Assembly: GCF_006345805.1 (NCBI RefSeq)
Contig: NC_043000.1
Coordinates: forward strand, 108,686,001 to 108,750,000
Direction of reading: 5' to 3'
Length of the DNA: 64,000 nt
Source of the DNA: Octopus sinensis
Taxonomy: Eukaryota
Made by a program: the position numbers and the translations under genes. Below the pieces are notes generated by a model that did not search any database, had not been told where the DNA came from, and saw nothing but the letters and a program-made list of their open reading frames with translations. This document shows, in pieces, positions 10,912 through 60,670 of this stretch (the first letter of the stretch is position 1; the number at the start of each line of letters is the position of its first letter).

Positions 10912-10984
<73 letters not shown>

Positions 10985-11333: not shown

Positions 11334-11369
<36 letters not shown>

Positions 11370-15850: not shown

Positions 15851-15859
15851 AAGAACATT

Positions 15860-25900: not shown

Positions 25901-28900
25901 TAAATAAATCAACAACTATATTAGATTCAAGCCCTCTTGCACCTTACCATACATACATACATACATACATCATCATTTTATGTCCATTGTACAATGGTTT
26001 GAGTGGGGTGGCATGCTGTGCCAGGATCCAGCCTGATTTGGAATGGTTTTCTATGGCTGGATGCCCTCCCTAATGCCAACCACTCCAAGAGTGTAATGGG
26101 TGCTTTTATGTGCCACTGGCATGGGTGCCATTTGCATGACACTGGTATCTGCCACAACTGCAATTTTGCTCGGCTTGATGGGCCTTCTTTTCAAACACAA
26201 CAATGCCAAAGGTCTTGGTCATTGCTTTTGTGAGGCCCAACACTTGAATGGAGCTCAGCCATTTTGCCTCCATGAAGCCCAAAACTCGAAAGGAACTCGG
26301 TCACTTTGCCTCTGTCAGGCCTAATGGAAAAGATACAATGAAGATACATTTCAACAATGTGTCAAAGACAGCAGTTTCGTAGATAGAAGAGGAACCAAAC
26401 GTTAACAACTTATTCTGAATTAAATCAAGGCTTGGTCAATTTGGACTCCTACCGTTTCTCTGGATACATTCAGTTATGAAGTAATGCCCAACCTTTCAAA
26501 CTCATCATCTGCACATTTTTCACACTTTTCCAACTGAAGTGATATCATGGCCATATTCTTCATCGTATAACACTACCATATTGTAGTTTCCCTATTTCTT
26601 AATCTGTGCATGAGGGATCAATACCATCAAGAGGAAGTCAACAAGAGAATTATATAGTTAAAAAGAAAAAAGATTATTACCCTGCGTGCGTAAATGAAAG
26701 CAGGGCATTGTAGTCAATCGTCTTTGTTGTGTTTGAGAATCCAACTAGGAAGTTGGATTAAAGATGGTTGCTTCTGCTAGGAATCTATGGTGGAGGTGGC
26801 TATGGACTCTACCCCCAACAACCCTCTCAAGAACGGGGGGGGGGGCAGAGAAAAATAGACGAATGGATAAAATAAGGTAGTGCCCCAGTATGGCCTCGCT
26901 CAATCCAATGACTGAGTGAATGTTGATTCTTGTTTGCCAATACTTACTTGGATCTTCACATTGCCATTAATCTTGGAAGAGAGGGCAATAAATGTTGCCA
27001 CAGGTCCCTTGATAATGTCATCGTAAGCCACTACAAACGGTGAAAGTACTTCTGCAATAAAAAAGGAAAAACAAAAATTATTATTAATATAGAAAGGGCT
27101 GAAGGAGGACAGCTTCGACTTGAAATGGAAAGGGAAGATAGAGAGGAAAATAGTGCCTTCTAACAAACTTGTTGAGAGATGGGTGACAGTAGCAAGAATG
27201 GTCCAGATAAATGGGCCTGCTCTGAGTATGTGTGTCTATAGATTGAGAGAGGGTGATGAGGGAGAGGGTACTTGCCTTAGTGGTCAGAGTAAATGGGATT
27301 TGTGCAGCTTTCACAGGCAGCCCTTAGAGGTCTCCCACTTTTTGAGGAATTTTCTGGTTTGAATTTTTGTTTCTTTGTTTTTGTTATTTTACTGTTAATA
27401 GGGCTTCGTAGAGCCACATGCCATATCCTATTGTATCATCTTGTACAATCCTTGATCTGTTTTTAAGCCCTTATTAAAGAAATTATTATTATTATTACTG
27501 AAAGAATCAGAAGTGTGGTGGAGAAAATACTCTGTGGTATTTTCTTCAGTTGCTTTCTTTTACATTTAGAGTTCTAATTCTGTCAAGGTTGATCTTACTT
27601 GTCACCCTCTCAGAATCAATAAAATCAAGTACCAGCTATGAATTGGGGAGGGGGGGCGTCAATGTAACTGGCTACTATTCGCCCCGTGCCAAAAAGAAAT
27701 ACTGTGACCCTGGACCAATGCTAACAATCATCATTATTTTCTATGAATCTGACAAAGAAATCACAAGTGTAACAATGTAATGGACAAATTAAATAAAAGA
27801 GGATCAATGAGACGTGTGAAAGTGCTTTCATTGCAATTTCTGACTTTGTCAATGACATGCCTTCCTCCTCCTCTTCTCCGGGTCTGCAACGAAAGGACTT
27901 GGTCAAACTTAACAGATTGATTGATTAATCTAAGGGTTAATCAGAAGAGAAGAGTATCGATTGAAACTTTTGGAAAAACCATTGTAAGAGGTAAAACAAT
28001 ACAAGAAGAGAAACATTTAGAAGTGGAACCACTTGAAACTCTATTACAGACACTGTTGAAGTCCAGACCCAGAAGATGCAACTCTACTTATTATGATCAT
28101 CCTGACACTCCATATTTCATGGCTGGGTATACTTAAGACTATGAACAACATTTAGCTATAGAAACATCTGAGGAAAGGGGGTTGTGTATGTCTCATGGGA
28201 CCATGGGCCTGAAACCAATCCCAGACAAGGATTTCATGGAAGCCCAGCCATTGGCCATGGATGCAGGTTGTCCTTCTTCACAGCATCCCTGTTGTTTAAG
28301 AAGAAAGCAGAGACCAGTACTGATGCCGTTGCTATAGGAATGCAAAGAGCAACGTCACAGCAGGATATTAAGTTGGAACACCACGAGGCAGACAAACTGA
28401 TGGGTTCAAGACTCGAAATTTCATTTTCTGGGGGAAAAACAGCTTCTCCAACAAAAATAATCCCAGTTACAGCAGTGGACTTCAGCCATGCTGGAGCACT
28501 GCCTTGAAGGGTTTACGAGGATCGATAAGTCTGATACTTATTCTATCAGTTACTCTTGCCAAACCACTAAGTTATAGGGGATACAAACAAACCAAAACTA
28601 GTTGTCAGGCAGGGGTAGGGGAGACACAACAAAGACACACATAGGCTAGGATTCCACACAGTTTCTGTCAACCTTATTAACTCACAAAGCATTGATTGAT
28701 AGCAGAAGATACTTGCCCAAGGTGTTGTGCAGTGGGACTGAACCCAAAACTGGATGGTTACAAAGCAAGCAGAGTCGCGCCCACATTTATATAAACAGAG
28801 AGAAAAAGAAAAGGACCAAATCATAAAAGCAACATATTTTGAGGGTACTTCAGGATCATCAGCATCATTATCATCTGGAATTTCAGGACCGTTTCCTTTT

Positions 28901-31421: not shown

Positions 31422-31454
<33 letters not shown>

Positions 31455-31659
31455 TGTGTCAAAAGGATGATTAATTACTAGCTAGAATCATAGTCAAGCA
31501 GTAATTAACAGCAATTCTTGTTAGTCGTATCAGTGAAATAAGATTAGATAAACAAATGTAAAATATAGCCAGCAGTGGTCCAGCTTGGAGTAAATCTTAC
31601 ACTTGCACACTGTATTAATTCCATGCTAATCTCACTATTTCCATAATCCTTTCAATATA

Positions 31660-31690
<31 letters not shown>

Positions 31691-37600: not shown

Positions 37601-38506
37601 CAGATTTGGTTGGCTTGGGGCTACAGAAGAAGACACTTGCCCAAGACACCAAGCAGTGAAAAAGATGATGCAGAAATAATATATAAACAGCCCTGACAGT
37701 CCAGAGGTTGTGATAATATGGTCAATTTGTTATACAGTGTAACCAACAGCATAACTGGGGAATAATCTCTTTCACAGAATATTGGAAATGAATGGCATTC
37801 ATTTACCAAAATACCAAAATCTTGTGATGTTAAGACAAGTCACTCAGCCACACACACAACTGGCCATGGGGAAATATTATCTTGTTTGGTAACGGGTGAA
37901 GGTTGGCAACAAGAAGGGCATCCAGCCATAGAGAACTTTTCTCAATAATCTCTGACTCGTGCAAGTATGGAAAAATGGGCATTAAGATAATGATCATCAT
38001 CATCATCATCATCATCATCATTTTGACTTTATGGTGGAGCATACTGTAATTGTTTAGGCATTTAAAACAATATCCCTAATTTAAAAATAGTAATAGGTTT
38101 CTAAGGGACTTTGACAATTGTACTAATAATCAGAAATGTAAAAAAGAAAGAAAAGGAGATTGGGTGAGATTCAGTTTGGTGCTGCAGTACAGGATGTTTT
38201 GTTAGAATTTTCTTTTTGTGGAAAGTTTAACCGATTTTTTTTGGTCCCCATTTTATTTATGAGACAAGCTATGTTACGATTGAAGGTTGGAGAACTAGTG
38301 GCCTCTTAAAGATAATGGGTATTTGTTTTAGGAAATTCAGGCTGTTATGTTGAGTAAAGTAACCAATTATATAATACATTGCTCGTATCACTGTTTGTGG
38401 TAGAATGTACATATTACATGTGTGTCTTTGACAAGGGGAGAGAGAGAGAAAGAAAGAGAGAGAGAGAAGAGAGTACTGGGAGGAAAGAAAGAAGAAGTAT
38501 ACTGGC

Positions 38507-38555
<49 letters not shown>

Positions 38556-39425
38556 AGGCAACTGAGTATAGGTTAGAAAGTATAAAAGCAGAAGTTATTT
38601 TGCTAAATAGTGTTGTGTGATTGAATCATGACTAAATTACCTCCGGGTTTTCTGAAGAGCTAAATAGCTGCAACTACAGCAGAGGCGAAGCTGGTTTTAG
38701 TTGGTATGAGTCATGCAGAATGGAGGATTAGTATTTCAGGAATGTCTAGTGAACAAAGGCTCCAGAGGTACAGGTTGTTGAAAGACAACAGGTATGGTGT
38801 CAGGAGAAAAAGGCTTCAGAATAGAAACGAAGAGATGAACACACACACACACACACATACAACTACTAGATACATGCCTGTGTATATATACATATATACA
38901 CACACACACACGGTATCTTTTACTTGTTTCATGCATTATACTATGGCGATGCTGGGGCATCACCTTGAACATACTGAACATATATACACGCACACACATA
39001 TATACATATGTATATACATACATATACGTCTATGTATATGCATACACATATATACATATGTATATACATACATATACGTCTATGTATATGCATACACATA
39101 TATAAATAGATATCTATGTATACATATATACATACATACATACATACATATATGTATACACACATATATATATATATATACAAACATATGTATACAGATA
39201 TATTTGCATACATATATGTATGCATACATATACATACATATATGTATTCATACACATATATATGTACATATAAGTATACATATATATATATATATACATA
39301 CATATATATATGCATACATATATATATACATACACACATATAGATATATATACATACATATATACACATATAGATATATATACATACATATATACACATA
39401 TAGATATATATACATACATATATAT

Positions 39426-39476
<51 letters not shown>

Positions 39477-39832
39477 CACACAAACATATACATGGTGGTT
39501 GTCTACCCCTTATGCAGAGTCTGACCACTTTAGATCTATCATGACGTCAGATGAGGCTTTTTAAACCCCACAAATGTTTTGAAAAGAGCCCAACATAAAC
39601 TGCATATCTGCTTTGGACCACCAAGAACTGCATTTAGGTTCTGGTCTTTATGGCTCTTAAAATGTCTTAGATTTGCAGACCTTATGGCATACACGACATA
39701 GAGAGACATTCACAGATAGATAGGCAGAGTAGTCTGGTGTCTGGCACGGGATTAGCTTATCTCATGAGCAGGTAGAAGCTCTTTAACTTTGGTTGGTAAT
39801 GTACCTAGGAGAAGGAAATCTCAAAAACATAT

Positions 39833-39894
<62 letters not shown>

Positions 39895-42800
39895 GGACAT
39901 GTTTGGGTTCCATGGCATACATGGAGGCTACAGTTTTGGTTCTCGCAATGTGAAGCTAAGTAAAAGCATGGTTACCCTTATATACAATTTCATCCCCTGT
40001 AACCCTCTCTATCTGAGTATCCCTAATCTTGTGGGCTCATAGGTACTGGTGCCACATGAAAAGCACGCATGCCAGTGCTGCTGCGTGAAAGCACCCAGTA
40101 CACACTGTACGAAGGGCATCCAGCTGTAGGGACCGAGAATGTAGTGGGTGCTTTTTATGTTATGTGTCACTGCCACAGGAGCCACTCAGGTGGCACTAGC
40201 ATCAACCATGTTAGGATGGTGCTTTTTACGTGCCATTGGCATGGGGAGCAAGTCATATACACACACACAAAAATTATTGAAACCACAACATTACATTTTA
40301 CCCAGTCTTTATCAAACCCACTCCGTTTGAGGATAAATTTGTTTAAATTATTTTTCTAGGCTTACTAATGTAAAGAATGAGGGTGGGGCAGGAGTTGTTG
40401 TTGATGAAAATGCCCTCTATTGTTTATTCCCTTCCCAACTAGAAACACTTGTGTCCACCGACCTTGTGGCAATGCATTGACATCACAACTTCCTTATATA
40501 TCCTGGGATTCATGACAATTTAAAAAAAAAAAGAGAACCAAATGTGTGTGTGTGTATAAGCATACATGTACATAAAGAAGTTGATTTACAAACACCTCTA
40601 TCTGTTTCTTTATTACCCACAAGGGGCTAAACATAGAGGGGGCAAACAAGGACAGACAAATGGATTAAGTTGATTACATCAACCCCAGTGCGTAACTGGT
40701 ACTTAATTTATCGAGGATGAAAGGCAAAGTCGACCTTGGCGGAATTTGAACTCAGAACGTAACAGCAGACGAAATACCACTAAGCATTTCGCCCAGTGTG
40801 CTAATGGTTCTGCCAGCTCGCCGCCTTTTTTACAAACACCTCTATCATTAACACAAACATAGATATCCCTACATACTTGCACATACACACACACATTATT
40901 CTTCTCGACACTTCCATACATACATATGCAGTTAACCACACACACACACACACACACAGACAGAATTGGACAACACAATAAATTGTGAATCTTGCAAAGA
41001 AGGCAAAATTTACATGAAAGTAGAATTTATGGAGCAGATGATGAAGGCCATGATGTTAAGTTGGTGATGGGAGATAGTGTAACACCTACCTACTTCTGCA
41101 TAATCGCTGTCCTCCTCCTCGTTTTCTGTTCCCGCATTTTGTTGCGAGATTTTATCAGTGGAGAGGTCATACTCGTGACTGACAGAAGTCCTGTTCTTGC
41201 TATTGTCATAGTAGGGGTCATCGTTGGAATGGTCCTTGATATTATCATAGTTGGGGTAATTGTTTACGTAGTGGGGGCTTTCCTGGTAGTTGTTGATAGT
41301 CTCATAGTAAATAGTCCCAGTGCTGTCGTTGCAATCTGATACACAAACAGCAGGACTTTTCCCTGTAATAACTCTACTGCCATCAGGACCACACTCACCA
41401 CCACCACCACCACCGTCCTGTGTCACAGCCACCAACGGCTTTTTGTGACTGTGACTAACACAGGCACCCATGTATATGTGACATGAAAACAAACTCAAAC
41501 TCTACCAAAAGTATCACCAAACTTCTCTGGCCCCTTACATCACAGTCCAGTACACTAAGCTCCTGATTAGTTGGTTTGTGTGATACTCAAGCAACACACA
41601 CACACACAAACAAACTAGTGTTGTTGCAGCTATAGACTGATAATCCTACTGTTTTTTTCTAGACCAGCCCCACTCCAGCCCCACTTGTGTAGTAAATGAG
41701 TTTGGGAACATAATCATTACCTTTAGGGCAACTGCACCTTCAATCAACCTCTTCCATTACTCCAACCAGCATTATTTAAATTGCTAGGACCCCTCAACAC
41801 CAACAACAACACTAACAAGGAGACACCCAGAAGTGGTGTGGGGGGTGGGGTATATTACCAAAAAGAAAGAAAGGAAAACACTTTCCCCACCACTGTCCCC
41901 ATCTCCATTCAATCAACAACAGATCACTCACCATTCCCAACAACAGCAGACAGCAACCACCTACCATCATCATCATCAACACCATTATTACTTATTACCA
42001 CCACCACCACACACAACATAATTCCTTTTCTCAACCTTCCCCACCCTCTCACCACTGCCACCATACAGACAACCTGTCAGTGTGTTATTGTCACCAAGAA
42101 CACCAGTGCCACCTCCAGCCAAATGTGACAACCACTAAAGCTTTCCCCAAAAAGATACTAAATACCAGGAAAAGCAGAAGTTGGTGTGTAGAGATGTGTG
42201 AATGAATAATGTCTTCTCCCCCTTGTTTATGGCACAGCTGGGGGGGGGGAGTTATAAGGGGGGGGGGTAGCTAGAGATGGATGGGGGCAAGGTACTTTAT
42301 TCCATGTCTTCTTGCCATTGAACCATCAAACTAGCAAAACTATTGTTTATTTGTGTGGTGATGGTCATGGTGTGTGTGTGTGGGGGGATGCCATAAGCCT
42401 GTCACTGCTGCCCAAGCAGGGTCAATGTGAAGATAAACACACACAGAGGTTTCAGTACAGTTTCTGTGTAGCAAACTTCACAGGTAAATCCAGAGTGGTC
42501 AATCCCAGGCTTTACTAGAAACTACTTATCCTATATGTGATGCAATGAAATTGAACCTGAAACCTTGTGGTTGGCAAGCAAACTTCTTAACCACACAGCC
42601 AAGCTTGTACCTTCTTCCCTATGACTGGCAGAGAAAGTGCACAAGTTACAAGTCACTACCAACTCTACTAGTGCTTCTACTACACCACCACCACTTACCA
42701 TGACCATCACCATTATAAGCAACAAATGTATTTATTTGTGAAGATGCCATTTTTACTTCACTTGACAATTATAAATTACATTTCACACCTGAATTATTCC

Positions 42801-45800
42801 ATTTCTGTCTGTCATTCTATTTCGTTGACTGTTATGGGAAGGAGGAGGTGCATGACTAGGAAGTAGAAAGAGACAGAAAGAGATGGAATAATTCAGGTGT
42901 GAAAGGTGATTTATAATTGTCAGGTGAAAAAAAATGCTAATACTCATCTTGCAGCAATCACACTATGTTGTGACAAGGAGACAGAACCTCCCCCCCCCAC
43001 ACACACACAGCAGGCTTCTTTGTGTTTCCATCTACCAAATCTACTCACAAGGTTTTGGTTGGCTCAAGGTGGCCATAGAAAACACTTGCCCAAGGTGCCA
43101 CACAAGGGGTCTGAACCTGAAACCATACGTTCGGGAAGAGTCGTGATTGCATTCAATATTGAAACTGTTCAGCTGGATTTGAACTTGGATATCATAAATC
43201 AGAACCTTTGTGTCATGTCAAGCAAACCATTTTCTTCTTGGATTGTATGCTAACAACTGCTGAGCAACACACACACACACACACACACACACAGTGCAAG
43301 CATCTTGTCAGGATGGGGAGGTGCTTGCAGAATGTGATGGTGGTGGAGGGCATGAAAACCAAGCAATTACATTACAGGAGTCATACATTGTATTACATAA
43401 ATTGCATCATATATACCAGCACATATTGTATTACATACATATATATTTCTTTACTACCCACAAGGGGCTAAACACAGAGGGGACAAACAAGGACAGACAA
43501 AGGGATTAAGTCGATTACATCAACCCCAGTGCGTAACTGGTACTTAATTTATCGACCCCGGAAGGACGAAAGGCAAAGTCGACCTCGGCGGAATTTGAAC
43601 TCGGAACGTAACGACAGACGAAATACGGCTACGCATTTCGCCCGGCATGCCAACGTTTCTGCCAGCTCGCCGCCATATTGTATTACATACATATAGTGCA
43701 GCATGTACCTGCATACGCTGTATTACTTAAATATATTGTGTTACACAGACAGTGAATAAATTTGACTGAACCCCACCTCACCACTCTTTGAAACAGAATA
43801 AGACAGTAAGAGAGAGAAAAAAAAACAGAATAATTGATAACTCACCTGTGGCAGGTTGATAATATACTGGCGATTGGTAATACGGATAGGAATAATTGTA
43901 TGGGGTATAGTAATAATTCATGTTAGGGTTGTTTAGATACATACTTATAGGTTGATGTATAAAAACAAAAACAAAAATACTATTCAGATTGTTGTGTAAG
44001 TGTATGCGTGTGTTGTGGAGCTTTATTTGGCACCAAACACTACTATATAGAAATAAATGTGATGGATACGAAGAGTGTAATTGGGCAGAAAATTTGCAAC
44101 ACAATTAAGTAAGGTGGATAATTAAAACTTGCTGGTCTGTAATTACATAACTGCTATTATAAAAATAAATTTCCTACTTTAAGAAACAAGATGAACTGAA
44201 ATCTAAACTTCAGTGAGTCTGAATGATAGATCACAGACAAAACGGGTCAAATGACTTCAACAGAATAATTTATGAAATAAATAAAAGAAAGGAGGAAAGA
44301 AACAAAGAAAATTAAAACAGACAAAAAAAAAACCTGAATAAAAATGATTAAGCAAGATAATGTGAGGAGTGAAGGTGTATGGGTATTTTATAAGTCACAG
44401 GGAGACTGACATCAGTGTGATGGTGTCATTGTAACACAGCTATGATGATAAATTGATTAACTTGAATTAGAAGATACAAGAGGCACCACCCATCAGATTA
44501 TGACAAATTGGCTGGCTGGCTGGCTGGTTTGTTGGTTGGCTGTCTGGTTGGTGTTCTGGTAATCCTACATCACAAGTTGTCCCCCACCCCACCACAACTA
44601 CCCACCTCACACCTGTAACATTTAATCTAATCTCTATTAACATTTAATGCAAAACAGTTGTACTTCCATTTACTTTAGTTTCATCCTCTTCACTGTGGCC
44701 CTCACCCCCAACAACTGCTGGAAACTGATTTCACAGCAATCTGTGTTCTAAAAGTCTGATAAACTTTTTCTTAATCTTTTTGTTGTTGTTTTAACTCACA
44801 TCACAGGGGGACATTGGGACGTAACTGGAAATTTCTTCAGCTTCAAGTTACCATATATTCAACTAAGTCACCTCAGGGTTCACAAAGATTAAAGCTACCA
44901 ATCTGTTCATATTCAGAGATATGAAGGATAAACGTCAGAATGAATCAAAGAAAAAGACATGGGGCAAAAGAGAAGATTCTCCATGGACACTGTTAAGTCT
45001 ACAAGTCTGGATTTGATTCCAGATCTGCAAACAAGCAAAGCACAAGCCTTTATACATGGTAGCTTAACATATAGCAACCAAATCTTCCCTGCTCAAATCA
45101 TACACTAATCGTAAATTACAAAAAACATATAATTATATAATAATATACAGAAAATTCAATATTTCCAATCGTAACCACTATAAAAATATTAACATTTTTT
45201 TTTGTTTTTGCTTTTAACATTTTTTTTGGTCCTTATTATATAGTCACATTATGTTGTGATTCCATTCCCATGTGATTTTATTCCCAGGTATGGCTTTGTA
45301 GTAAGTAATTTGCTTACCAATAACATGGTTCTAGGTTCAGTGAATAAAGGGTCCAATTTAGGTCGTATATCAGTGTGTGTATATAAAAAATTTTTTTCGT
45401 AATGTGGCAGTGGATGCTCAGATAGTGTTACCACTAGAATAAGAATAGCCTGGGCAAAGTTTAGAAAGCTTCTACCCCTACTGGTGACAAAAGGTCTCTT
45501 GCTCACAGTGAAAGGTAGATTGTATGATGCATGTGTGCAAACTGCCATGCTTCATGGCAGTGAAACATGGGCCGTGACTGTGGAGGACATGCGTAGGCTC
45601 AAAAGAAATGAAGCTAGCATGATCCGCTGGATGTGTAATGTCAGTGTCCATGCACAACAGAGTGTAAGCGTCCTGAGAGAAATGTTGGACATAAGAAGCA
45701 TCGGGTGTGGCATGCAGGAGAGATGTTTGCGTTGGTATGGTCATGCACTATGGATGGATGAGGAGAGATGTGTGAAGAAGTGCCACTCCCAAACAGTTGA

Positions 45801-46844
45801 AGGAATCCAGGGTAGAAGTAGACCCAGGAAGACATGGGATGAGGTGGTCAAACATGACCTTCGAACATTGGGCCTCACGGAGGCAATGACGAAAGACTGA
45901 GACCTTTGGAGATATGCTGTGACTGTGAAGACCTGACAAATTAAATGAGTTCATGGCTCGCAGGACGGCCTGCTGTGCTTACCTTGGATCGTAGGGCAAC
46001 CCGCTGTGCTTGAGGAGACCTATTGAGTCAAGTACATCAACATCAAAATAAAAATTAAATGGAAATTGTAGTTGTGATATCTGTACCAGTGGCACGTAAA
46101 AAGCACCAACCAATTGTGGCCGCTGCCAGTCTCCCCTGGCACCTGTGCCGGTGGCACGTAAAAAGCACCCACTACATTCACGGAGTGGTTGGCATTAGGA
46201 AGGGCATCCAGCTGTAGAAACACTGCCAGATCAGACTGGAGCCTGGTGCAGCCTCCTGGCTTCCCAGACACCGGTCGAACCGTCCAACCCATGCTAGCAT
46301 GGAAAACGGACGTTAAATGATGATGATGATATATAGATAGATAGATGAGGTAATACATATATGTATATATGTGTGAGTGCTTTTGTCCCCCATTACTTAA
46401 CTGGTTTTAGTTTGTTTACTTTCCTGTAACTTAACGGTTTGGCAAAAGAGACCAACAAAATAAGCACCAGGTAAAACACTGAGGGCCATTTGTTTCATAA
46501 AAATGCTTCAATGAGAGAGATTCAAGCAAAAGTGGAGAAAATACATAAAACTTTGGTGAAATGGAATTTCAAATGACCTAAAATAAATAAATCTGAGACA
46601 TTCCACCCCTAACTCCATCCCCGACACCCTTAATTTCATGCTTGCTGCCACAGCACTAATTTTACAACAGATAAAATAACACAGGCTGCACTCAAGACAC
46701 TCCATAGACACCAACAATTACAGGTGCAATGTCTATGCTACACCACCACCACCACCATGAACATCAACAGTAATTTCATACTAACTAAATGTACATCACT
46801 TTCCAGTTGTGGGATGGAATGAGTTAAGAGTATGTGTGTGTGTG

Positions 46845-46889
<45 letters not shown>

Positions 46890-47050
46890 GATATAAGATA
46901 AAATTTTTTCGGGAAAAAAATTTTATCAATGGCCAGCATATAAAAAAAATGCCTTTAAAGGTAAAATTTAAACATAGTTTACAAGATAAGGGCAGAAGAA
47001 AAATTCTAATGCCAGATACGCCGAAACAAAAAATTGTTGATAATCATTAA

Positions 47051-47113
<63 letters not shown>

Positions 47114-47298
47114 TATATGATAGATCAGTAGCCACTACACACATTTTTTTCTCTCCTTGTTTCTTTCTGTGTTCCTTTCTGTGGAAGAGCGTAGGCTCGA
47201 AAAATAAAAGAGTTGTTCAATTCCTGAGCATTATACTAATACATCTGTTTGTTTTCTACACCACCTGTCTTCATCTTTTGTTTTTTTCGTGAATTCTC

Positions 47299-47348
<50 letters not shown>

Positions 47349-50300
47349 TGCTAGCATGGAAAGCGGACGTTAAACGATGATGATGATGATGATGATACAC
47401 ACACACACACAGGGTGCAATGAGTAAACTGTTGCCATTTTATATTTCAAGTTTCATATATGCGCATTGTTTGAATCGTAGGGTCAGTTGGGCACTGTCTG
47501 TGAGAAAAACAGCACCATGACATAATTCACTGTGCCAGAAATTTGGAAACGACATGCTGTACTCCAATAACATGGTTTACAAACTCTATGCTTAAAATGA
47601 CCAATTTTAAATACTATTGGAACTTACACACAATATACAGGAAACTCCTATGTATACCATTCTGCTTAAATAATAGAACTGCAGATACAATATCCCTGCA
47701 TATATCACGTCTGTTTTCATTCCTCCACTTCACTCTCTATTTCATATCTTCTCGCACCGTCTCTGATGAAGGGATATATAAAATATCCCGGAAGCAACTA
47801 AACCTTCTCTTTGTAAATGTTCTGAAATCTTTCACAGCCTTGGATTTTTATCTCATTCTGTTAATTTTGATATCATCATCATCATTGTTTAACGTCCACT
47901 TTTCATGCTAGCATGGGTTGGACAGTTCTACTGGGGTCTGGGAAGCCCGAAGGCTGCACCAGGCCAGTCAGATCTGGCAGTGTTTCTACAGCTGGATGCC
48001 CTTCCTAACGCCAACCACTCCATGAGTGTAGTGGGTGCTTTTTACATGCCACCTGCACAGGTGCCAGGCGAGGCTGGCAACGACCACGATTGGATGGTGT
48101 TTGTTACATGCCACCGGCATGGAGACCAGTCGATGCGGTGCTGGTTACGGTCACGTTTGGATGGTTCTCTTACATGCCACCGGCACTGGTATCACAACTA
48201 CAAATTCCATTGATATTGATCGATTTTAATTTTGATTTTCACTTGCCTCAACAGGTCTTCACAAGTAGAGTTATGTGTCCCAAGAAGGAAGGTATGCACA
48301 GGTGGACTGACTACGTCCCAGGTAGAGACCACGGGTTATGGCCTCACTTGTCCTGCCGGGTCTTCTCACGCACAGCATACTTCCAAAGGTCTCGGTCACT
48401 GGTCATTTCCTCGGTGAGACCTAAAGAGCGATGGTCGTGCTTCACCACCTCGTCCCAGGTTTTCCTGGGTCTGCCTCTTCCACAGGTTCCCTCAACCGCT
48501 AGGGTGTGGCACTTTTTCCCACAACTATCTTCATCCATTCTTACCACCTGTCCATACCAGCGTACACGTCTCTCTTGCACACCACATCTGATGCTTCTTA
48601 GGTCCAACTTTTCTCTCAAGGCACTTACACTCTGTCGGGTATGAACACTGACATTACACATCCATCGGAGCATACTGGCTTCATTTCTTGCAAGCTTACG
48701 CATATCCTCAGCAGTCACGGCCCATGTTTCACTGCCATGTAGCATGGCTGTTCGTATACATGTGTCATACAGTCTGCCTTTTACTCTGAGTGAGAGGCCT
48801 TTTGTCACCAGCAAAGGTAAGAGCTCTCTGAGCTTTGCCCAGGCTGTTTGTACTCCAGCAGTTACACTTTCAGCACACCCGCCCCCGCTACTGACTTGAT
48901 CACCTAGGTAACGGAAACTATCAACTATTTCTAGTTTTTCTCCCTGGAATGTGGCGGAAGATGGTCTCTGCGCATTTTCAGTGTTTATTGCACCAGAGCA
49001 TCTGCCACATACAAAAACTATCTTCCTAGTTAGCCTTCCTTGAACATTGCTGCACCTCTTATGTGTCCATAGCTTACACTTGGTGCATCTTATAGAGTTC
49101 CTACCTACGCCTTTTCTACAGATCGAGCAGGGCCATCTACCTGAAGGCGTTTGTGATTTGTCTACCTTCCTACTTATTAGGACTTTGGTTTTAGCTCTAA
49201 GGCCCTTCGATTCTAATCCTTGCTTCCACGTCAGAAACTTCTCCTCCAGTTCTGATAGTGACTCAGTAATTAGAGCAAGGTCATCAGCATAGAGGAGCTC
49301 CCAGGGGCATCCTGTCTTGAATTCCTCCGTTATTGCTTGGAGGACTATGATAAATAGGAAGGGGCTGAGGACTGAGCCTTGGTGGACTCCAACTTCTACC
49401 TGGAATTCTTCACTGTACTCGTTGCCAACCCTCACCTTACTAACAGCATCCCTGTACATGACTCGCACAGCTCTCACTAACCATTCATCTATCCCTAGTT
49501 TCCTCATTGACCACCAGATAAGGGATCGGGTGACCCTGTCAAAGGCTTTCTCCAAGTCAACGAAAGCCAGGTACAGAGGTTTATCTTTGGCTAGGTATTT
49601 CTCCTGCAGCTGTCTCACCAGAAATATGGCATCGGTGGTGCTTTTCCCTGGCACGAAACTGAACTGCATCTCGTCCAGGTTGACTCTCTCCCTAATCAGT
49701 TGGGCTATGACCCTTTCCGTAACCTTCATTACCTGATCCAACAGCTTGATACCTCTGTAATTACTTGTATCTAGGGCGTCACCTTTACCATTGTAGCAGT
49801 TGACTATTATGCTACTACACCAGTCATTGGGTATGACTCCTTCATGTATCACCTGGTTAACTATACGGGTGACTAGGCTATAGCCGACACTGCCAGATAT
49901 TTTGAGCATCTCTGCAGTAATTCCTGATGGGCCTGGGGCTTTCCCTGTCTTCATGCTTCTAATTGCCTTAACTACCAAGGAACTGTCAACTCGGATAGCT
50001 GGTCCCTCAGTTGGGAGAAACCATTTTCTTTAAGTAAACTATGGCACATCTCTTAGCAAGATAATGCTGCTGGTATTTTATAGAAGTGCCAAGAAAACAT
50101 GGTGCCCCACCTTCAAAGAAGATCTGAAATAATTTAGTATCATCACCTGAGAAGATGCAGGCAACTATGTTCAAAACTAGGAAGAGTAGGGGCATCTTGC
50201 TGCTCAATGTAGCGGCCAATTGCATGGGAGGAACTCAGACTGTGTGGTGGGACTGAACGTGTTGTACCAATCTGAGAGATTATTATCAGTGATGAAAGAT

Positions 50301-53300: not shown

Positions 53301-56300
53301 ACTTATTAATTTGTTTGCTATCAGTTTATCAAGCTGCAGTAAGGTCATACTTTTGCTAAATTTCAAACATCCAAAAACATGTCTGGAGTTGTCACCCATA
53401 AATACTGGTAAACAGATGTCCTGGGCTGAGAAGACTTTTTCCTCAACACATTATACATTTCACTTCAATGTTCAACTGCTCCGTGCATTAAGTATGCTTT
53501 TATTCATCTGCTACAAAATATAATAGAGACTGTCATGATTAAATATATTTTGAGGCAGTGGCACTCTGTGGAGTGGCTGGTGTTAGGAAGAGCATCTAGC
53601 TGTGAAAAACCATGCCAAAACAAACGCAGAAGTCTGGTGCAGGCTTCTGTCAAACCCTCCAACCCATGCCAACATGGAAGGAAGACATTAAACAATGATG
53701 AGCATGTAAAGAGCACCTTTCGAGCGTTGGACCTCACAGAGGAAAAGTGAGTGAGTTCCTTTCGAGCGCTGGACCTCACAGAGAGAAAGTGACTGAGACC
53801 ATTTGGCATTATGTCATGCTTGAGAAGAAGACCCATCAAGCCAAGCAAAATCGCAGTCATGGCAGATACTGGCATCCAGTCATAGAGAACCATGCCAAAT
53901 CAGACTGGAGTCTGGTGCAGCCTTCCAGCTTACCAGCTGCCCAACCTGCCCAAACTGTGCCAGCATGGACAACGGATGTTCAATGATGATGATGATTGGT
54001 AGAATTTGAGAAAATGCTTTGTTATTTGTCAACTCTTAGTGTTGTGACTTGAAATCATCATCAGGTTAATTCTGCCATTCATCCTTATGAGGTTGACATT
54101 GTTTTACAGGAAAATAGATCTTCCTGTAACTTGAGGGGATGCCTTGACCCATCTTCAACACCATCCTCTTTCTTTTCCAACTGGGGTAACCATGTACCGC
54201 CTCCACAGAAATCCACCCGTTTCGACACCACTCCCATTACCTGCTATAAAGCCTCTCCCCTCAATACCATTCCCTCCACTCACCAGAAGGGTTTTGTCTT
54301 ACAAGTTGCTGGACCTCACTAGAGCTAAAGCCCTTTAAAAAGCATTCAGTTCACTCTGTAAAGTGGTCAGCTTTGGGAAGGTCATCCAGTTGCAGGAACC
54401 ATGCTAAAGCTGATAAATGGAGCCTGGTGCAGAACTCTGGCCTGCAGGTTCTGGTTGAACCATCCAATCCATGCCAGCATGAAAACAGTGGACATTGAAA
54501 TGATGATGATGATGATATATACATATATAGAACTATTTTTTTCGTTAGCACTCAAGTGTTACTGAAGTATGAGTCTCTGGATTAAGTGTACCAATATGAC
54601 TCAAAACTCTATCAAGATGGACAAACCGTGTTTTCATTTAACTGTAATTAGAACCTATAGGATAGGATTGAAAACCGAAACACCCTTTCATTTCTACCAT
54701 TGGAATATTAAGGATATATTGTGATGGAGGGAGAGAGGGAGGGTGAGTCAAAGTTCACATGTAGAGAGTATTTCCCCATTGTTTTGTTATAAAAGAAACA
54801 AACAAGATTGTAGGAATCTGTGTTTGTGATGTATGTTACATGTATTGTTGATTGGTGTGTGTGTGTGTGTGTTTATGCTAGCATGGAAAAAAACAGGATG
54901 GAAAATGATAATGAGTGTCTGTATAAATTCATATATATATATATACACCCATGAATACACAAATACCATATAAGGTATTACACAGAAATTATTAATTACG
55001 TCAATAATTACAAGTTCTTGTAATTATAACATCACTTAATACTTCCATTTGTATATATCGTTATGCTCACAAACTATCCTATTTTTGATGTAGTATCCTT
55101 TGAGCAGAAGCTAAATAAAATCAGGTCATAAAAACAATTCACTTGGCCATATCTGAGGCAGTTTGCAAATGGATTACTAACCTGCAAATCAGGTTCCACA
55201 ATCAAGACATTCTATAAACTCTAAGAGCAATGTAGAAGCTTTGGAACAGTTATTTTGAAATGGTTGACATCAGAAAATTTACTGAGTAAATAATTATTAT
55301 CAACAGTAGCCAAATTTTCCTCATACCAACTTTTTTTTACTACCTTTAGTATTGTAGTCATATCTTTGATATTCAGCTTCCAGTTGGAGAGAGTCTGAAA
55401 TCATTACTATCACTTTTGCTCTTCAAACTATACAAATATAAAATCTTTACAAATTTTCTAGAAACTCCAAGTTCCATTGCAGTTAAGTAAATGTTAAGAC
55501 CCTGTTTTCTGTTTCCTACCATGTTCCCTTTTCTCTAACCAATATCAGTGAAGTACAAAGATTCCGTGCTCCTTCTCCATGGGGCTAAAGATTAAGACTA
55601 CACATTCTATGAGCAGCCATTTTCCACTATGCATTATAAAGGAGAGTTGATGGCAAATAAAGAAAGGATATTGTTGAATGGTATGGTGGTGTTGACATAA
55701 ATAAAACAAAATTATCTAAGATATGGTACTGACCTAACTAAGTTCAAACTCCCTGCAGGCATCGTTGGCAAGTATATTTTGTCTCAATCCATTTAGCAAA
55801 CAGGTTAGCAATCATAATCATCGTTTAACATTTTTTTTCCATGTTGGTGTGGATTGGACAATCTGACAAGAACTGGAAAGCCAGAGGACTGCACCATGTT
55901 CCAGTGTCTCCTTTAACATGGTTTCTATAGCTGGGTGCCCTTTTTAATACTAACCACTTCCACAGAGTGTACTTTTTTACAAAGCACTGGCACAAGTACA
56001 GTCGCTAAGTAACAAGACAAAACCAAGGGGGAGGGAGTAGCATAGAAGAAGGTGGGAGGTTTTAGCCGGGTGATTGGAGGCTAAAGTGTGATAGAGAGAC
56101 AAGAACAGGTGTCTTGCCGTCAGGGAGAGACATAGTTAACCCAGTTGGAAAGGAAAGACGCTGATGGTGATAATGTGTGAGGGAGAGAACTGGGAATAGT
56201 GATGACAGAGTGAGCAATGTTTATCTACCCAGTTCCACAAATGCACAGTTAAGTACTGACTTGTGAAGCTCTTAGCAAATTAAGAGACATTAACACTTTT

Positions 56301-59300
56301 ACAAAGAAGCAGCACAGAGTCTGGCACCAACCGGTGTGTTTTGTCTTCAGCACTGGAACTACTTTATACCCATATAATTTGTAATGATGGCTGGACAATA
56401 GACAGACATATTGGACAGGACTAGCTTCTACCAATGTCCAATTCTTCAATTAACTGCAATTGGTCGGCAACTCAACAGAGAATTGGAATCCAGCAAACTT
56501 GTCAACATAGCAGTGGTTTTGGTAGGTGTGTGAGGTTTCATATTTTTTCTTTGCTTTATTTTTTTACCCCACTGGTTTTTTTGTTTTTTTTTGAAGGATG
56601 GAATTCTCTAGAACCAAGGCATAATATTTGTAGGTGATGGAAGATAGTAAACAACCAATGTCAGAAGGGTTTCTGTGACGACACAGACCGTTTTTACACT
56701 CCATCGTCCCAACCATTATTTCCCCCAACTCAACACATTCAACAATCAAAACAGAAAACCGAAAACCCTGTTTTTATCCCGTTTCTTTACTTCACTGATT
56801 ACTTGAATGTCTGGTCTGATAGTAAAGAAACTTCTGGAGCTGGAGATCATCATCATCATTTTTAGTTTGCTTTTCCATGCTGGTATGGGTTGCATGTTTT
56901 TTTATCTATTTATTTTTTGAGGCAGTGTTTTACCACCTAGATAGTGGCAGGCACAGGTGTGTGGTTCCCAACCACATGATTCCAAGTTCAGTCCCACTGC
57001 TTGGCACCTAGAACATGTGTCTACAGTAGTCCCATACCAACTAAGGCCTTCAGAATGGATTTTTCGTTGATGGAAACTAAAAAAAAAATCCATCATATGT
57101 GTGTGTGTGTCCTTGATTTGGCATGGTGTAACAGTTGTAAAGGATTATCCTTGTTATACAAGCAGTGTCATTCATTTCCAATGTCCTGTGAAAATATGTC
57201 TGGTCACGGGGGGAAAATATTACCTTCCTCGGAAACAGGCACGGGTTGATGACAGGAAGAGCATCCACCAGTAGAAAATCTGTCTCAACAAACTCCATCT
57301 CAGCCATGCAAGCATGGAGAAGAGAACATTAAAACAATGATGATGACCACTTCATCATATCCATTCTCTACACTCACATGGGTTGATGATCATGCAATTT
57401 ATTTTTAATCAGTATGTTTATGAGAAAAAGATAGTCTTTGAAATTTTGCTTTTTTAAATAAATAATTTGGTTGTTAATTCCTTTCTATTCAATACATTGG
57501 AAAAGCTACATTTATAATGGAAATAAACAAACAGAAACAGTTGCCTAAGGAATGAAATGAAATGGGTCCATAGTTACATAAGAATGCAATTTCTTTTTCA
57601 TGGTTGTTATAATGATTGGAAATTAAAAAAAAAAAAAATTCAAAGATGTACAGAAAATCTTAGTTTTTAGTAAACGCCTTTGGAAATATTGAATTACATA
57701 AGAGATCACAGCTATGGCCATGTGGTTAGACTGTCAGAGGAAAGAATCAGAAAACAGATTCAAGACAAGCCAACTGGCAGGAGATCTAAGGGTAGAATAA
57801 GTTACTTGGATAATATCCATAGTCTGAGTCAGTGATATTTTGGGAATCCAGCCGGAATGCTTCTTGATATCGCCCTTTAATACCTCATCATCACCATCAT
57901 GTAGAATCCATTCTCCATGCTGGCATAGGTTGGACAGTTCAACAGGAATTGGCAAGCCAGAGAACTACATCAATTTCCAATGTCTGCCATAGCAGGTTTT
58001 CACTGGCTGGGTTCCCTTCCAAACACCAACCACTTTACAGGGTGTACTGGGTCCTTTTTATCTGGCACTAGTGAAGTCAACAAGTAATTCACAAGACAAA
58101 ATCTCTCAACCGAGGTGGGAGAGCAGTATTGAGGGAGGTGGTTTTATGCCAGATAATCAGAAGTTAAAGTATGACAGGAATGGGTATGATGCTGTGGGTG
58201 AGATGCATGGTCACCCCACTTGGAAGAGAAAGATCGTGGTGAAAATGTGTCATGGTGTACCATCAACTTACAACAACATATTTTTTGGTCTTTGCCCTGA
58301 ATTGGTTGGGGCGTTGCCTTACTAGCACTTTACTGCATTGCCTTACTAGCACTTGTACTCGTAGCATGTGAAATATTTGAGCGAGGTCATTGCCAGTGCA
58401 GCTGGGCTGGCTCCTGTGCAGGTGGCACGTAAAAAGCACCATTTGGGCGTGGCCGTTTCCAGTATCACCAAACTGGCCCTCGTGCCAGTGGCACATAAAA
58501 GCACCCACTACACTCTCAGAGTGGTTGGCGTTAGGAAGGGCATCCAGCTGTAGAAACTCTGCTAGATCAGATTGGAGTCTGGTTCGCCAGACCTCAGTCA
58601 AATCGTCCAACCCATGCTAGCATCGAAAGTGGATGTTAAATGATGATGATGACTTCTTTACATGTCTGTCACCTTTCAAACACACGATCTCCATCTAAGA
58701 ACTTTCCTCTCACACCTTGTTTTTCTCTCGATTCATTTGTCATCCATCAATCATGCACACACAAATTACATGCCTAGCAAAACATGCGTGCGTCATCCAT
58801 TTCCAATTTTTGTACATCCTTTGCATTCAATACTAATATTTTGGTCCCATGCAGTATCAAACTTTAATTGGAGACAGAGTTTCTTTTTTGTTGCTAATAG
58901 AGTCAAGAGCTTTCTAAACTCCACCCTTCGATTCGTATTCCGACTACTATACTTTGAAACACTCTCCTCCACTGCTAATTAGGTCACCTTGCTAAAAGGA
59001 GCTATCAATCACATCTACGGAAACTAACATAAGGGATAGCTAAAATATCAGGGCATTGGGCAAAAATCTCTTTTGGAAAGGGATGCCAGACCATCCCTGG
59101 TAATATAAAAAAATAACTTCTACTGAGTGATAACAATCACTTGGTTGAAGTGGCCAAAATTAAGTGTCCTGTCTAATGACATTATTACAGTGCCAACAAT
59201 GGATTTGAACCGGAGACCAATTATCTAGCACTATATAGCCATTTTAGATTTGATTTGCCCCTGATCAGTAATAAGCCACACTGGCTGTTTTACAGCAGGA

Positions 59301-60670
59301 TTGCACGACTTAGAAAATGGTAAGACAATTCCACTATTCCAACAAATTAATAGTTTAGATACTTTTAATCCTGAATAGAGTATGCAGCAACTGAACATAA
59401 AATTTCTTAATTTAACCTAAAGCATGAAACTCAACAAGACATACGACTGGGTTAGTAGATTGTAGTAGATAATAGGCTTTTATGGGGTTATGTCCAGTCA
59501 CGGCATGAAACGTTTCAAATTATGCCAGATAAGAAATTTACTTGGTGATACACAAAATGAGCATAAAACTATAGACCTCATGTTTAATCAGAATATCCAG
59601 GTGCCGTTTTCAGCTAGTGTGATAGAGGGTAATGGTTGGGGGAAGTTGTAGGGAATAATTAGAGAAGGGGCACACACTATGGGTCAGGGAGAAGAGGGAG
59701 CATACTGTAGGATTGAGGGAAGTGGGTGTACATTGTATGGATGAGAGAAGGGGTTGCATAGTGGAGGGCCAAAAGAAAAGGAGGCACACACTGCAGGGCT
59801 GACCTAAGGTGTTGAAACCACGGCAGAGGCCCTGTTAGAAGTTGGAGTGCAACCATATATAGAAGTGAAATAGCTGAACTGATAAGGCATAAATCTACAA
59901 GTTTTTATGTCTTGCAGGTGTTCTGTTGAATATTTGGACCGAAAACTTATTTCTGTAATACTTAAGTTTACTTAGCTGTTAGAAAGAGATGTGGGAACTT
60001 CAGTGAATCTTAGCTGGGAAAAGTTCTTTGAGGTCAACTGGAAGCACTTGATCTTTTCCTAATAATAAAGAAAGGAGGTGGGGGGATAAAAAGAGAAATT
60101 TAATTTCTTACCTTCAGAGTTGCCTGCATTAACTAACTTTCCGGAAGTGTTGGCAATAGTCTCAAGCCGTGTGGATACCCGTTCCAGGCTCACCACCGCC
60201 GTCTCAAGACGCTCAATTGATTTTATCATTTGCTCAGCTGACATTTCGCCAGAATTGAGTCGAGCTCTTTCTTCAGCAGCAATAGCAAGAGCGTTGGATA
60301 GCTCACTGGCAATACGTTTTTCTCTTTTTTGTGATGCTTTAATAAGTTCACTTGCAAACGGTAGAGAGGAAACTGGTTGTTCACTGCTGGGCTTTTTCAC
60401 AATGTCCTGTTTAAATTCTTTAGCCTTTGCTTCTGAGGTAGAAGTATTTTCTTTAGAAGATGCAACTGGATCAGGTGCAGTCTCTTTTTTGATGTCTGTT
60501 GTTTCTACGCTGGCTCGTTTTGTTTGAAGGTCAAGTTCTACTTTCTCAACAATTGGTGGCTCAACTCCGTTTCCTGACTTGTAAATTGGATTTTCAGAAT
60601 TCTTGTTGTCTGGTGTTACTTGCAAAATCTTCTTCGATTTAGATTTCCTACAACCAGTACAACAAAACAT
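19826..60670 (-). CDS. CAP1: Adenylyl cyclase-associated protein (CAP/Srv2 family), multi-exon, 3'-partial in this window
   Basis: The spliced exons translate without a stop: ...[216 protein letters not shown]. The motifs RLE, FNHLSAxSESIxALGWV, FYTNRVLK and HTTGLxW are diagnostic of the CAP N-terminal domain. All junctions are GT-AG with matching phases. CAP1 is a family label; the vertebrate CAP1/CAP2 distinction cannot be made here. Confidence 0.96.
20818..20900 (-). CDS. CAP1: CAP exon, 83 nt ([27 protein letters not shown])
   Basis: Acceptor tactttaattgcag, donor gtaagt, phase 0 to 2. Contains the signature KEM.D...FYTNRVLKE. Confidence 0.96.
21495..21809 (+). repeat. Interspersed repeat ending in a short (TAA)n tail, probably a LINE 3' UTR
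   Basis: Ends ttttaccccagtgtcactttcatgacatgcactgctttctcactcaataataataat; family assignment is from recall only. Confidence 0.4.
22675..22764 (-). CDS. CAP1: CAP exon, 90 nt ([30 protein letters not shown])
   Basis: Acceptor tgtctctttcag, donor gtaagt, phase 0-0. Contains the signature REKNR..[17 protein letters not shown]. Confidence 0.96.
22841..23126. repeat. Minisatellite, about 32-nt unit (caagtttatatagacacatacccatatatata) x9
   Basis: Nine copies of caagtttatataga; unit length varies only in the (TA)n and ca parts. Confidence 0.95.
23608..23817. mobile_element. piggyBac-like MITE (210 bp) with TTAA TSD
   Basis: TTAA|CCCTTTAGTGTTTA ... TGAACACTAAAGGG|TTAA; TIRs match at 13 of 14 positions. 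Confidence 0.85.
24720..24773 (-). CDS. CAP1: CAP exon, 54 nt ([18 protein letters not shown])
   Basis: Acceptor ttgttttttctcag, donor gtaaga, phase 0-0. Matches the LLxPxS helix of CAP. Confidence 0.9.
25761..25838 (-). CDS. CAP1: CAP exon, 78 nt ([26 protein letters not shown])
   Basis: Acceptor ttgtcttcttccag, donor gtaaga, phase 0-0. CAP-like AFxAQRxFL..S..KKP pattern. Confidence 0.93.
26948..27051 (-). CDS. CAP1: CAP exon, 104 nt ([35 protein letters not shown])
   Basis: Acceptor ttttttattgcag, donor gtaagt, phase 1 to 0. Matches the first helices of the CAP helical folded domain. Confidence 0.93.
29620..30770 (-). mobile_element. Degenerate L1/Tx1-like LINE fragment (RT C-terminus and zinc-binding region)
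   Basis: Pieces read across frames: [60 protein letters not shown]...C.RC..HALFQCP. Boundaries approximate. Confidence 0.65.
31104..31453 (+). mobile_element. Severely 5'-truncated R4/Dong-type element between (TAA)n arrays
   Basis: Encodes [35 protein letters not shown], then a short UTR and (TAA)n at 31424-31453. Preceded by (TAA)n at 31075-31103. Confidence 0.75.
34875..35043. mobile_element. hAT-like MITE
   Basis: Ends cagcaattcttcacc / ggctgagaacattg; 8-bp flanks atttaaac / ctttagac match at 6 of 8. Confidence 0.45.
36200..36450 (+). mobile_element. Penelope-like element ORF fragment (region after the RT)
   Basis: [47 protein letters not shown] resembles the TNIG..F..L..KHFP..HK..KIFN...VK.SYS...N....I.AHN segment of Penelope-like ORFs (recalled pattern). 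Confidence 0.6.
38965..39490. repeat. Complex (TA)/(CA)/(TACA) microsatellite field with an embedded unit of about 30 nt x3
   Basis: Seen directly; it produces the spurious YIYI/CVCI ORFs in the track. Confidence 0.95.
40603..40828 (-). mobile_element. tRNA-derived SINE with an 18-bp TSD
   Basis: TSD tttacaaacacctctatc at 40585-40602 and 40829-40846. Confidence 0.9.
41090..41471 (-). CDS. CAP1: Candidate alternative CAP first exon, 127 aa, starting [11 protein letters not shown] with a Tyr/acidic tail
   Basis: Inside the stop-free, non-repetitive ORF 41010..41498. Starts MGxCxS..KK. Ends at donor GTAG|GTAGGT in phase 1, in frame with exon 27051. An internal phase-1 acceptor-like site is present at 41335. 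Confidence 0.65.
43444..43673 (-). mobile_element. tRNA-derived SINE with an approximately 22-bp TSD
   Basis: catattgtattacatacatata at 43422-43443 and 43674-43695. Confidence 0.9.
43846..43942 (-). CDS. CAP1: Candidate alternative CAP first exon, Tyr-rich 32-aa leader ([32 protein letters not shown])
   Basis: ATG-initiated open frame ending in a perfect donor ACAG|GTGAGT in phase 1, so in frame with exon 27051. 11 of 32 residues are Tyr and the segment is not a microsatellite. No transcript evidence. Confidence 0.6.
45399..46330 (+). mobile_element. RTE-clade LINE 3' fragment, same family as 47871-50015, opposite orientation
   Basis: ORF 45484..45900 aligns by eye with the C-terminus of the 544-aa ORF ([20 protein letters not shown]...[15 protein letters not shown]). 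It has a matching 3' UTR and a (GAT)n tail. Confidence 0.9.
47120..47300 (+). mobile_element. Short element between (TA)n arrays, Penelope terminal-repeat-like
   Basis: About 180 nt bounded on both sides by long (TA)n. Contains ctgtggaagagcgtaggctcgaaa, a hammerhead-like core. Confidence 0.5.
47871..50015 (-). mobile_element. RTE-clade LINE, 5'-truncated, with 3' UTR and (GAT)n tail
   Basis: Contains the 544-aa RT ORF followed by about 470 nt of 3' UTR ending ...atgctagcatgaaaagtggacgttaaacaatgatgatgat on the minus strand. Clade inferred from the C-terminal GSETW / RWYG / GRGRPRKTW motifs. Confidence 0.93.
48344..49978 (-). CDS. LINE reverse transcriptase ORF (no endonuclease domain in the retained part)
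   Basis: Motifs [47 protein letters not shown] and FRYLG; a C4HC3 cluster follows the RT core. Confidence 0.95.
   Translation of the reverse strand: MVVKAIRSMKTGKAPGPSGITAEMLKISGSVGYSLVTRIVNQVIHEGVIPNDWCSSIIVNCYNGKGDALDTSNYRGIKLLDQVMKVTERVIAQLIRERVNLDEMQFSFVPGKSTTDAIFLVRQLQEKYLAKDKPLYLAFVDLEKAFDRVTRSLIWWSMRKLGIDEWLVRAVRVMYRDAVSKVRVGNEYSEEFQVEVGVHQGSVLSPFLFIIVLQAITEEFKTGCPWELLYADDLALITESLSELEEKFLTWKQGLESKGLRAKTKVLISRKVDKSQTPSGRWPCSICRKGVGRNSIRCTKCKLWTHKRCSNVQGRLTRKIVFVCGRCSGAINTENAQRPSSATFQGEKLEIVDSFRYLGDQVSSGGGCAESVTAGVQTAWAKLRELLPLLVTKGLSLRVKGRLYDTCIRTAMLHGSETWAVTAEDMRKLARNEASMLRWMCNVSVHTRQSVSALREKLDLRSIRCGVQERRVRWYGQVVRMDEDSCGKKCHTLAVEGTCGRGRPRKTWDEVVKHDHRSLGLTEEMTSDRDLWKYAVREKTRQDK
50335..50490 (+). 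mobile_element. Left-end fragment of the same piggyBac-like MITE family
   Basis: TTAA|CCCTTTAGT start and internal similarity to 23608-23817 (aaactggc, tacaatgt, cacatca, gataatgca); no right TIR seen. Confidence 0.55.
58330..58652 (+). mobile_element. Non-autonomous element sharing the RTE 3' UTR and (GAT)n tail; representative copy
   Basis: gagtggttggcgttaggaagggcatccagctgtagaaac...cccatgctagcat...gttaaatgatgatgatg matches the 3' UTR of the RTE copies; many similar copies occur (e.g. near 9130, 21160, 25970, 53550, 53790, 54350, 57900). Confidence 0.8.
60112..60670 (-). CDS. CAP1: CAP distal first coding exon (long ATG 60670; conventional in-frame ATG 60244; RLE motif)
   Basis: Lies within ORF 60059..60682. 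Contains [19 protein letters not shown]. Ends at donor GAAG|GTAAGA in phase 1, which matches the phase-1 acceptor at 27051. There is no AG between the upstream T-tract and ATG 60670. Confidence 0.9.

Follow-up and report, generated by a model that had tools for sequence, protein, structure and literature searches.

Can one actin regulator be given different N-termini by a choice between first exons? The question is raised by a stretch of 64,000 nucleotides (nt) of Octopus sinensis DNA (contig NC_043000.1, positions 108,686,001 to 108,750,000; hereafter the window), whose minus strand carries the 5' half of a CAP/Srv2 gene, made up of a first exon, 1a, and six exons (2 to 7, 27051-19826) coding for the helical folded domain (HFD). 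Two further open segments that end in splice donors, the candidate exons 1b and 1c, lie on the same strand within intron 1, which spans 33 kb between exon 1a and exon 2. Our analysis indicates that 1c is probably a genuine coding exon, as judged from comparative and compositional evidence. A CAP gene with this one further first exon, most likely spliced to exon 2, and with 1b as a chance open segment, is our best explanation of the locus, and as a whole we give it about an even chance of being right.

Possible joining of the three segments to a common exon

Exon 1a runs on the minus strand from an ATG at 60670 to its last base at 60112 (559 nt, donor GAAG/GTAAGA). Candidate exon 1b extends from an ATG at 43942 to 43846 (minus strand, 97 nt, 32 codons, donor ACAG/GTGAGT) and candidate exon 1c from an ATG at 41471 to 41090 (minus strand, 382 nt, 127 codons, donor GTAG/GTAGGT). 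All three lengths are 1 modulo 3, and each segment joins open and in frame to the common phase-1 acceptor of exon 2 (26948-27051, minus strand; ttattgcag/AAGTAC at 27051), with which the HFD begins; this establishes compatibility, not use. The splice sites of the leaders and the acceptor were placed by exact string search, and the exons were then joined in silico.

A preliminary description of this locus had proposed that three phase-1 segments with donors at 60112, 43846 and 41090 can each be joined, without a break of frame, to one acceptor at 27051. Their coordinates and sequences proved exact, and the in-frame join of every leader was confirmed when the exons were assembled. The RLE motif is confined to the distal leader, as had been stated: exon 1a has IERLE, and 1b and 1c are without it. 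The further proposal, that exchanging leaders places different N-termini on one helical domain, agrees with an AlphaFold2 model of the protein, in which helix 1 begins 4 residues past the junction of exons 1 and 2 and the HFD forms six helices with a predicted local distance difference test score (pLDDT) above 95. Because the common acceptor is located exactly at the domain boundary, any phase-1 first exon would keep the HFD intact.

Evidence that exon 1c is probably coding

A search of a database of 5.8 billion proteins with the 1c peptide returned a single cluster of open reading frames (ORFs), P0001, with 70% identity. Its three members come from three runs of one project (SRR11869391, SRR11869384 and SRR11869385) and from independent contigs (L001, L006 and L007). 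All three contigs align colinearly with the window, from the upstream region through the ORF into the intron, and are about 82% identical to it in non-coding DNA. As this colinearity includes the intron, they are genomic or unspliced sequence of a related organism. The ATG and its context, the MG.CVS start and the donor GTAGGTAGGT are conserved in all three contigs, and the most highly conserved stretches are a block upstream of the ATG, a block of Tyr motifs and the donor.

The pattern of change within the ORF argues for a coding exon. All four of its indels (6, 3, 3 and 6 nt) are multiples of 3, compared with 5 of 17 in the flanks, and the first frame-breaking indel, of 1 nt, is found 42 nt beyond the donor. 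The ratio of nonsynonymous to synonymous divergence (dN/dS) is 0.27-0.51 in frame and 0.85-1.13 in shifted frames, and the differences per codon position (20/18/32) show a third-position excess. In a neutral simulation that used the substitution spectrum of the flanks, the expected amino acid identity was 0.65, whereas 0.746 was observed (p=0.0096). All 10 Tyr residues of 1c are kept (p=0.018 in the same simulation), as is the +2 Asn in all four YxN motifs. Composition was assessed with a position-specific score trained on the known CAP exons of the window and expressed per 100 nt, with 118 intron ATG-ORFs as the null set. In the correct frame, 1c has a log-likelihood ratio (LLR) of 5.36, against a null mean of -3.6 (standard deviation 4.1, maximum 5.1).

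A number of observations weigh against a coding role for 1c, and several of them favour the alternative that it is a non-functional ORF, which persists only because the genomes compared are about 82% identical, so that the gene has no alternative coding first exons. The nucleotide identity of the ORF (83.1%) is at the level of its flanks (81.8% and 83.7%), its dN is barely under flank divergence, and two of the four in-frame indels fall within GGT/GAG trinucleotide repeats. According to the neutral simulation, the ORF had a chance of 0.13 of staying free of stops, and by our estimate 64 kb of this base composition should contain about 0.4 ORFs as long as this one. The comparison is with a single lineage, in which eight single-nucleotide polymorphisms distinguish the three runs. 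Five of these are in the ORF (three nonsynonymous, two synonymous) and three upstream, which makes polymorphisms denser inside the ORF than around it. The 1c donor is modest, at 4.55 bits, but the constitutive donors of CAP themselves range from 3.0 to 5.2. A non-functional ORF would nevertheless not be expected to exceed the neutral simulation both in amino acid identity (p≈0.01) and in Tyr retention, nor to combine the third-position excess with a coding-like composition in the correct frame and a conserved ATG context, MG..VS motif and donor. We therefore regard this alternative as unlikely.

Other searches added no further relatives. When a profile of 1c was run with HMMER against the full set of 1.84 billion representatives, it recovered the P0001 ORF and no other homologue. 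Pfam assigned no family to leaders 1b and 1c, and neither the Tyr block of 1c nor exon 2, each searched as a degenerate pattern, had a match in JGI metagenome contigs. An exact look-up of the 1c read-through ORF found it not to be on record, and none of the protein, metagenome or exact-ORF searches brought up a sequence from this species. An origin of 1c from a repeat or transposable element was considered and rejected, as 1c has no self-similarity in the window. The preliminary description had looked to frame conservation and a dN/dS below 1 in each leader. Both are seen for 1c, in one lineage; no orthologous sequence was found for the N-terminal extension of exon 1a described below, and no orthologous sequence or homologue for 1b.

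The predicted leader of exon 1c and its surroundings

Leader 1c is predicted to be disordered (AlphaFold2 pLDDT below 50). It is rich in Asp, Asn and Tyr and carries the sequence DYAEV. Its start, MGACVSH, with a Cys at position 4, and the corresponding MGTCVSQ of P0001 both match the N-myristoylation pattern MG{EDRKHPFYW}xx[STAGCN]{P} with a nearby Cys, and the leader is thus likely to be N-myristoylated and palmitoylated at MGACVS. The start of 1b does not match. Lipid anchors and phosphotyrosine docking sites had initially been attributed to both leaders that lack RLE. For 1c, the conserved MGACVS-type start and the Tyr and YxN motifs lend support to this idea, which finds no support in 1b: that segment has no lipid-anchor motif, and its statistics are at chance level.

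The conserved block upstream of the 1c ATG (41519-41597, minus strand) is 90-93% identical to the related contigs, against a background of about 82%. Located 50-125 nt from the ATG, it contains TGATGTAAG and CCAACTAATCAG and is a possible promoter or element of the 5' untranslated region.

Within 1c itself, an internal AG at 41337-41336 (ctgctgtttgtgtatcag/AT) would define an open exon of 246 nt (41335-41090) that runs from phase 1 to phase 1. Hypothetically, its inclusion between exons 1a and 2 would preserve the frame and provide the RLE isoform with a Tyr-rich stretch of 82 amino acids. As for 1c as a complete in-frame cassette, this was rejected, as there is no acceptor upstream of its ATG. 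We also rejected as coding an ORF of 44 codons that ends at a donor-like site at 41932 (AATG/GTGAGT), since in the related contig L006 its ATG is lost and a 1-nt indel is present. The 15 bases that follow this site are identical in the same contig, and the site may close a 5' exon that is non-coding or be due to chance.

Is exon 1c part of the CAP gene?

We infer that 1c is spliced to exon 2 from their common strand, their matching phase and the lack of any other plausible exon. Two points weigh against this join: phase compatibility has a prior of one in three, and the spliced 1c-exon 2 protein was not found in protein databases. As these databases hold no close CAP relative (best identity 57%), the absence of spliced isoforms from them is uninformative. 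At least 120 CAP matches were obtained; among those listed, all are of 301 amino acids or fewer and identity does not exceed 57%, and full-length CAPs and close relatives seem to be missing.

Alternatively, 1c might be coding but be part of a different gene, located inside intron 1 of CAP and not joined to it. Such a gene would encode a small adaptor, myristoylated and rich in Tyr, either from a single exon or by splicing to unrecognised exons. Nested genes are common in large introns, leader 1c has no CAP-related sequence and has a conserved upstream block of its own, and its read-through ORF stops 78 nt after the donor. The frame of the read-through tail is not conserved, however, being broken by the 1-nt indel 42 nt past the donor, while the donor is. 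In addition, no poly(A) signal was found within about 475 nt of 1c, no other coding-looking ORF is present on the minus strand between 41090 and 27051, and the phase of 1c matches that of CAP exon 2. A nested gene thus appears unlikely as well.

If 1c is a first exon of CAP, it would be transcribed from a separate promoter, with its own conserved block upstream, and its phase-1 donor would splice to exon 2. This would yield a CAP that lacks the RLE oligomerisation coiled coil but retains the whole HFD and presumably also the C-terminal half.

Exon 1b

At 8.77 bits, the donor of 1b (CAG/GTGAGT) outscores every other donor-like site on the minus strand of intron 1 and is alone in reaching 8. The segment also lies in unique, non-repeat sequence and has an A at the Kozak -3 position, and all three leaders being in phase 1 and in frame would fit an arrangement in which 1a, 1b and 1c are all genuine, mutually exclusive first exons of CAP. 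Yet 1b has just 32 codons and, with an LLR of 0.16, falls within the range of the null ORFs in composition. Of the 28 donor-like GTs on that intron strand, 5 terminate a phase-1 ATG-ORF that has 30 codons or more, and an equal or longer phase-1 ATG-ORF is expected by chance at about 5-17% of donor-like sites (coincidence about 0.05-0.17). Neither a homologue nor an orthologous sequence was found for 1b, and its richness in Tyr, Asn and Pro is what AT-rich DNA yields. As an in-frame cassette, 1b was rejected for want of a suitable acceptor. Most likely, 1b is a chance ORF beside a strong donor-like site, and it is improbable that it is real; that all three leaders are genuine is more improbable still.

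Exon 1a and its N-terminal extension

Exon 1a is the canonical first coding exon of CAP. Its Met143, at 60244, aligns with the N-termini of other CAPs, and its RLE coiled coil aligns with their RLE motifs. Upstream of Met143, the frame is open for 142 codons (60245-60670, minus strand). This extension starts with MFCCTGC and has a Cys cluster and a polybasic stretch that resemble a palmitoylation signal, whereas the start of the exon fails the N-myristoylation pattern that 1c matches. With a composition LLR of 6.13, above all 118 null ORFs, the extension is coding-like. Helices are predicted at residues 104-139 (36 residues, pLDDT about 82), directly ahead of the coiled-coil helix at 145-179. 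A protein search with leader 1a joined to exon 2 gave no match, and the 1a read-through ORF was not on record in an exact look-up.

Given this coding-like, Cys-rich MFCCTGC extension, the RLE isoform may be lipid-anchored too, through palmitoylation. Exon 1a probably gives two products, a long Cys-rich form and, if translation is initiated at Met143 or at an internal start, a standard CAP, which from Met143 could be cytosolic. The contrast between an oligomerising and a lipid-anchored CAP that had been drawn in the preliminary description is consequently too simple, as exon 1a itself starts with MFCCTGC.

Possible function and relation to known systems

It is conceivable, though we hold it as a tentative idea only, that promoter choice at this locus determines which of two kinds of CAP is made: an oligomerising CAP, maybe palmitoylated via MFCCTGC, or an acylated CAP without coiled coil but with a cluster of Grb2-type YxN motifs, which would link receptor tyrosine-kinase signalling at the membrane to the recycling of actin monomers. 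The Tyr-rich cassette from 41335 could provide a third mode. The 1c-CAP protein would be membrane-tethered, and SH2 proteins could dock on it once its tyrosines are phosphorylated.

The logic of such a swap has a parallel in PSD-95/SAP97, whose alpha and beta forms use alternative 5' exons to exchange a palmitoylated Cys motif for an oligomerisation (L27) module. This is the exchange proposed here for 1c and 1a, although the family is unrelated and the analogy is one of mechanism only. FRS2 and LAT have an N-terminal acylation motif and, behind it, a disordered stretch that contains several YxN tyrosines of the Grb2-SH2 type, the same layout as in leader 1c. There is no detectable homology, and in contrast to FRS2, with its PTB domain, and LAT, with its transmembrane helix, the 1c leader would be attached to a module that regulates actin.

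As for CAP itself, the view taken in the preliminary description that the RLE region supports its activity is well founded, as loss of the oligomerisation domain weakens N-CAP (PMC6888645). The activity of N-CAP scales with oligomer order (PMC6888645), and a leader without the coiled coil should for that reason weaken cofilin-assisted disassembly. By analogy with engineered low-order N-CAP constructs, 1c-CAP should be weaker in this reaction and act locally at the membrane.

The preliminary description knew of no report of such an arrangement, but CAP isoforms that lack the RLE region, and a palmitoylated one, have precedents in Drosophila and Toxoplasma gondii. The Drosophila capulet gene gives a short CAPT-RA and a long CAPT-RB, with differing N-terminal regions on one core (bioRxiv 10.1101/2025.09.12.675872). 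The paper does not detail the N-termini of the fly proteins, and it gives no sign of a myristoylated, Tyr-rich leader. In T. gondii, longCAP has an N-terminal extension with C6 and C8, is membrane-bound and apical, while shortCAP is cytosolic (PMC6785269). This pair parallels the MFCCTGC start at M1 and Met143 in exon 1a, and likewise includes a lipid-anchored isoform. Unlike first exons, however, the T. gondii isoforms arise by alternative translation initiation. Moreover, apicomplexan CAP is short and consists of the CARP domain only (20-24 kDa, PMC6785269), so that no HFD or oligomerisation domain is there to be swapped.

With metazoan CAP1 and CAP2, the protein encoded in the window shares the RLE coiled coil, the linker and the six-helix HFD, the latter being 43-57% identical to those of animal CAPs. 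It differs in its Cys-rich and basic extension of 142 amino acids and in having a candidate first exon that would replace the coiled coil. Many invertebrate CAP ORFs in the protein database start directly at the HFD, without RLE. In one invertebrate genomic contig (L002, 3150-3460), the ATG of a CAP (MSVAGYTDIV...) is located at the start of the HFD, with an in-frame TGA and a splice acceptor just upstream. No RLE motif was found in the 3.4 kb upstream in this contig, which thus encodes a CAP without coiled coil.

A recent review of CAP treats isoforms only as separate genes. Our literature search for alternative first exons or promoters of CAP found nothing specific, and we came across no CAP described as having a leader that is myristoylated and rich in YxN motifs. 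Alternative N-terminal CAP isoforms, including lipid-anchored ones, are already known, and the type of leader encoded by 1c is a plausible new variant. How active CAP is depends on the oligomer state of its N-terminal part, and its targeting in animal cells is poorly understood. If the proposal is true, the octopus gene would encode a natural low-order, membrane-tethered CAP, with a lipid anchor and SH2-docking tyrosines in place of the coiled coil. It would offer a direct path from tyrosine-kinase signalling to actin turnover, as well as an in vivo test of the oligomerisation model. If RNA data do not bear it out, what remains is an ordinary CAP gene whose first intron is large and filled with repeats.

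Architecture of the locus

The HFD exons were found by tblastn with a human CAP1 probe, and their boundaries were then refined by eye. We considered the probe valid because the CAP1 chain 9q7o of the PDB aligns identically. Downstream of exon 2, all on the minus strand, the HFD continues in exon 3 (25761-25838), exon 4 (24720-24773), exon 5 (22675-22764) and exon 6 (20818-20900) and ends in exon 7 (19826-19931). The assembled protein matches the Pfam family CAP_N (PF21938) at residues 196-353, with a complete profile (1-159) and E=7.8e-64, and this match begins 10 residues inside exon 2. Human and mouse CAP1 structures in the PDB match the HFD with E-values down to 4e-54 (9q7o, 6rsw and 6rsq), and the HFD crystal constructs 6rsw and 6rsq start at residues that align with PFVVAYDD. 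Pro-rich, WH2 and CARP (PF08603) exons were not found in positions 1-19825 by tblastn and motif scan. Presumably, either exon 7 is followed by another intron, 19.8 kb or longer, or the remaining 3' half of CAP is outside the window.

Intron 1 is packed with interspersed repeats, microsatellites and a reverse-transcriptase fragment of a long interspersed nuclear element, while a self-similarity check within the window places exons 1a, 1b and 1c all in unique, non-repeat sequence. A reverse-transcriptase ORF of a non-long-terminal-repeat retrotransposon is located at 48344-49978 on the minus strand (PF00078, E=2e-26) and has a tail with a PHD/C1-like zinc finger. A second, partial reverse-transcriptase copy is in the opposite orientation (45484-45900, plus strand). 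An interspersed repeat occurs in several copies on both strands (9008-9355, 46020-46358, 47905-48213, 53504-53893 and 58263-58610), with ORFs that have a common motif. Finally, a long imperfect microsatellite of the (TA/CA) type at 38706-39528 gives rise to spurious ORFs of 120-270 amino acids on both strands.

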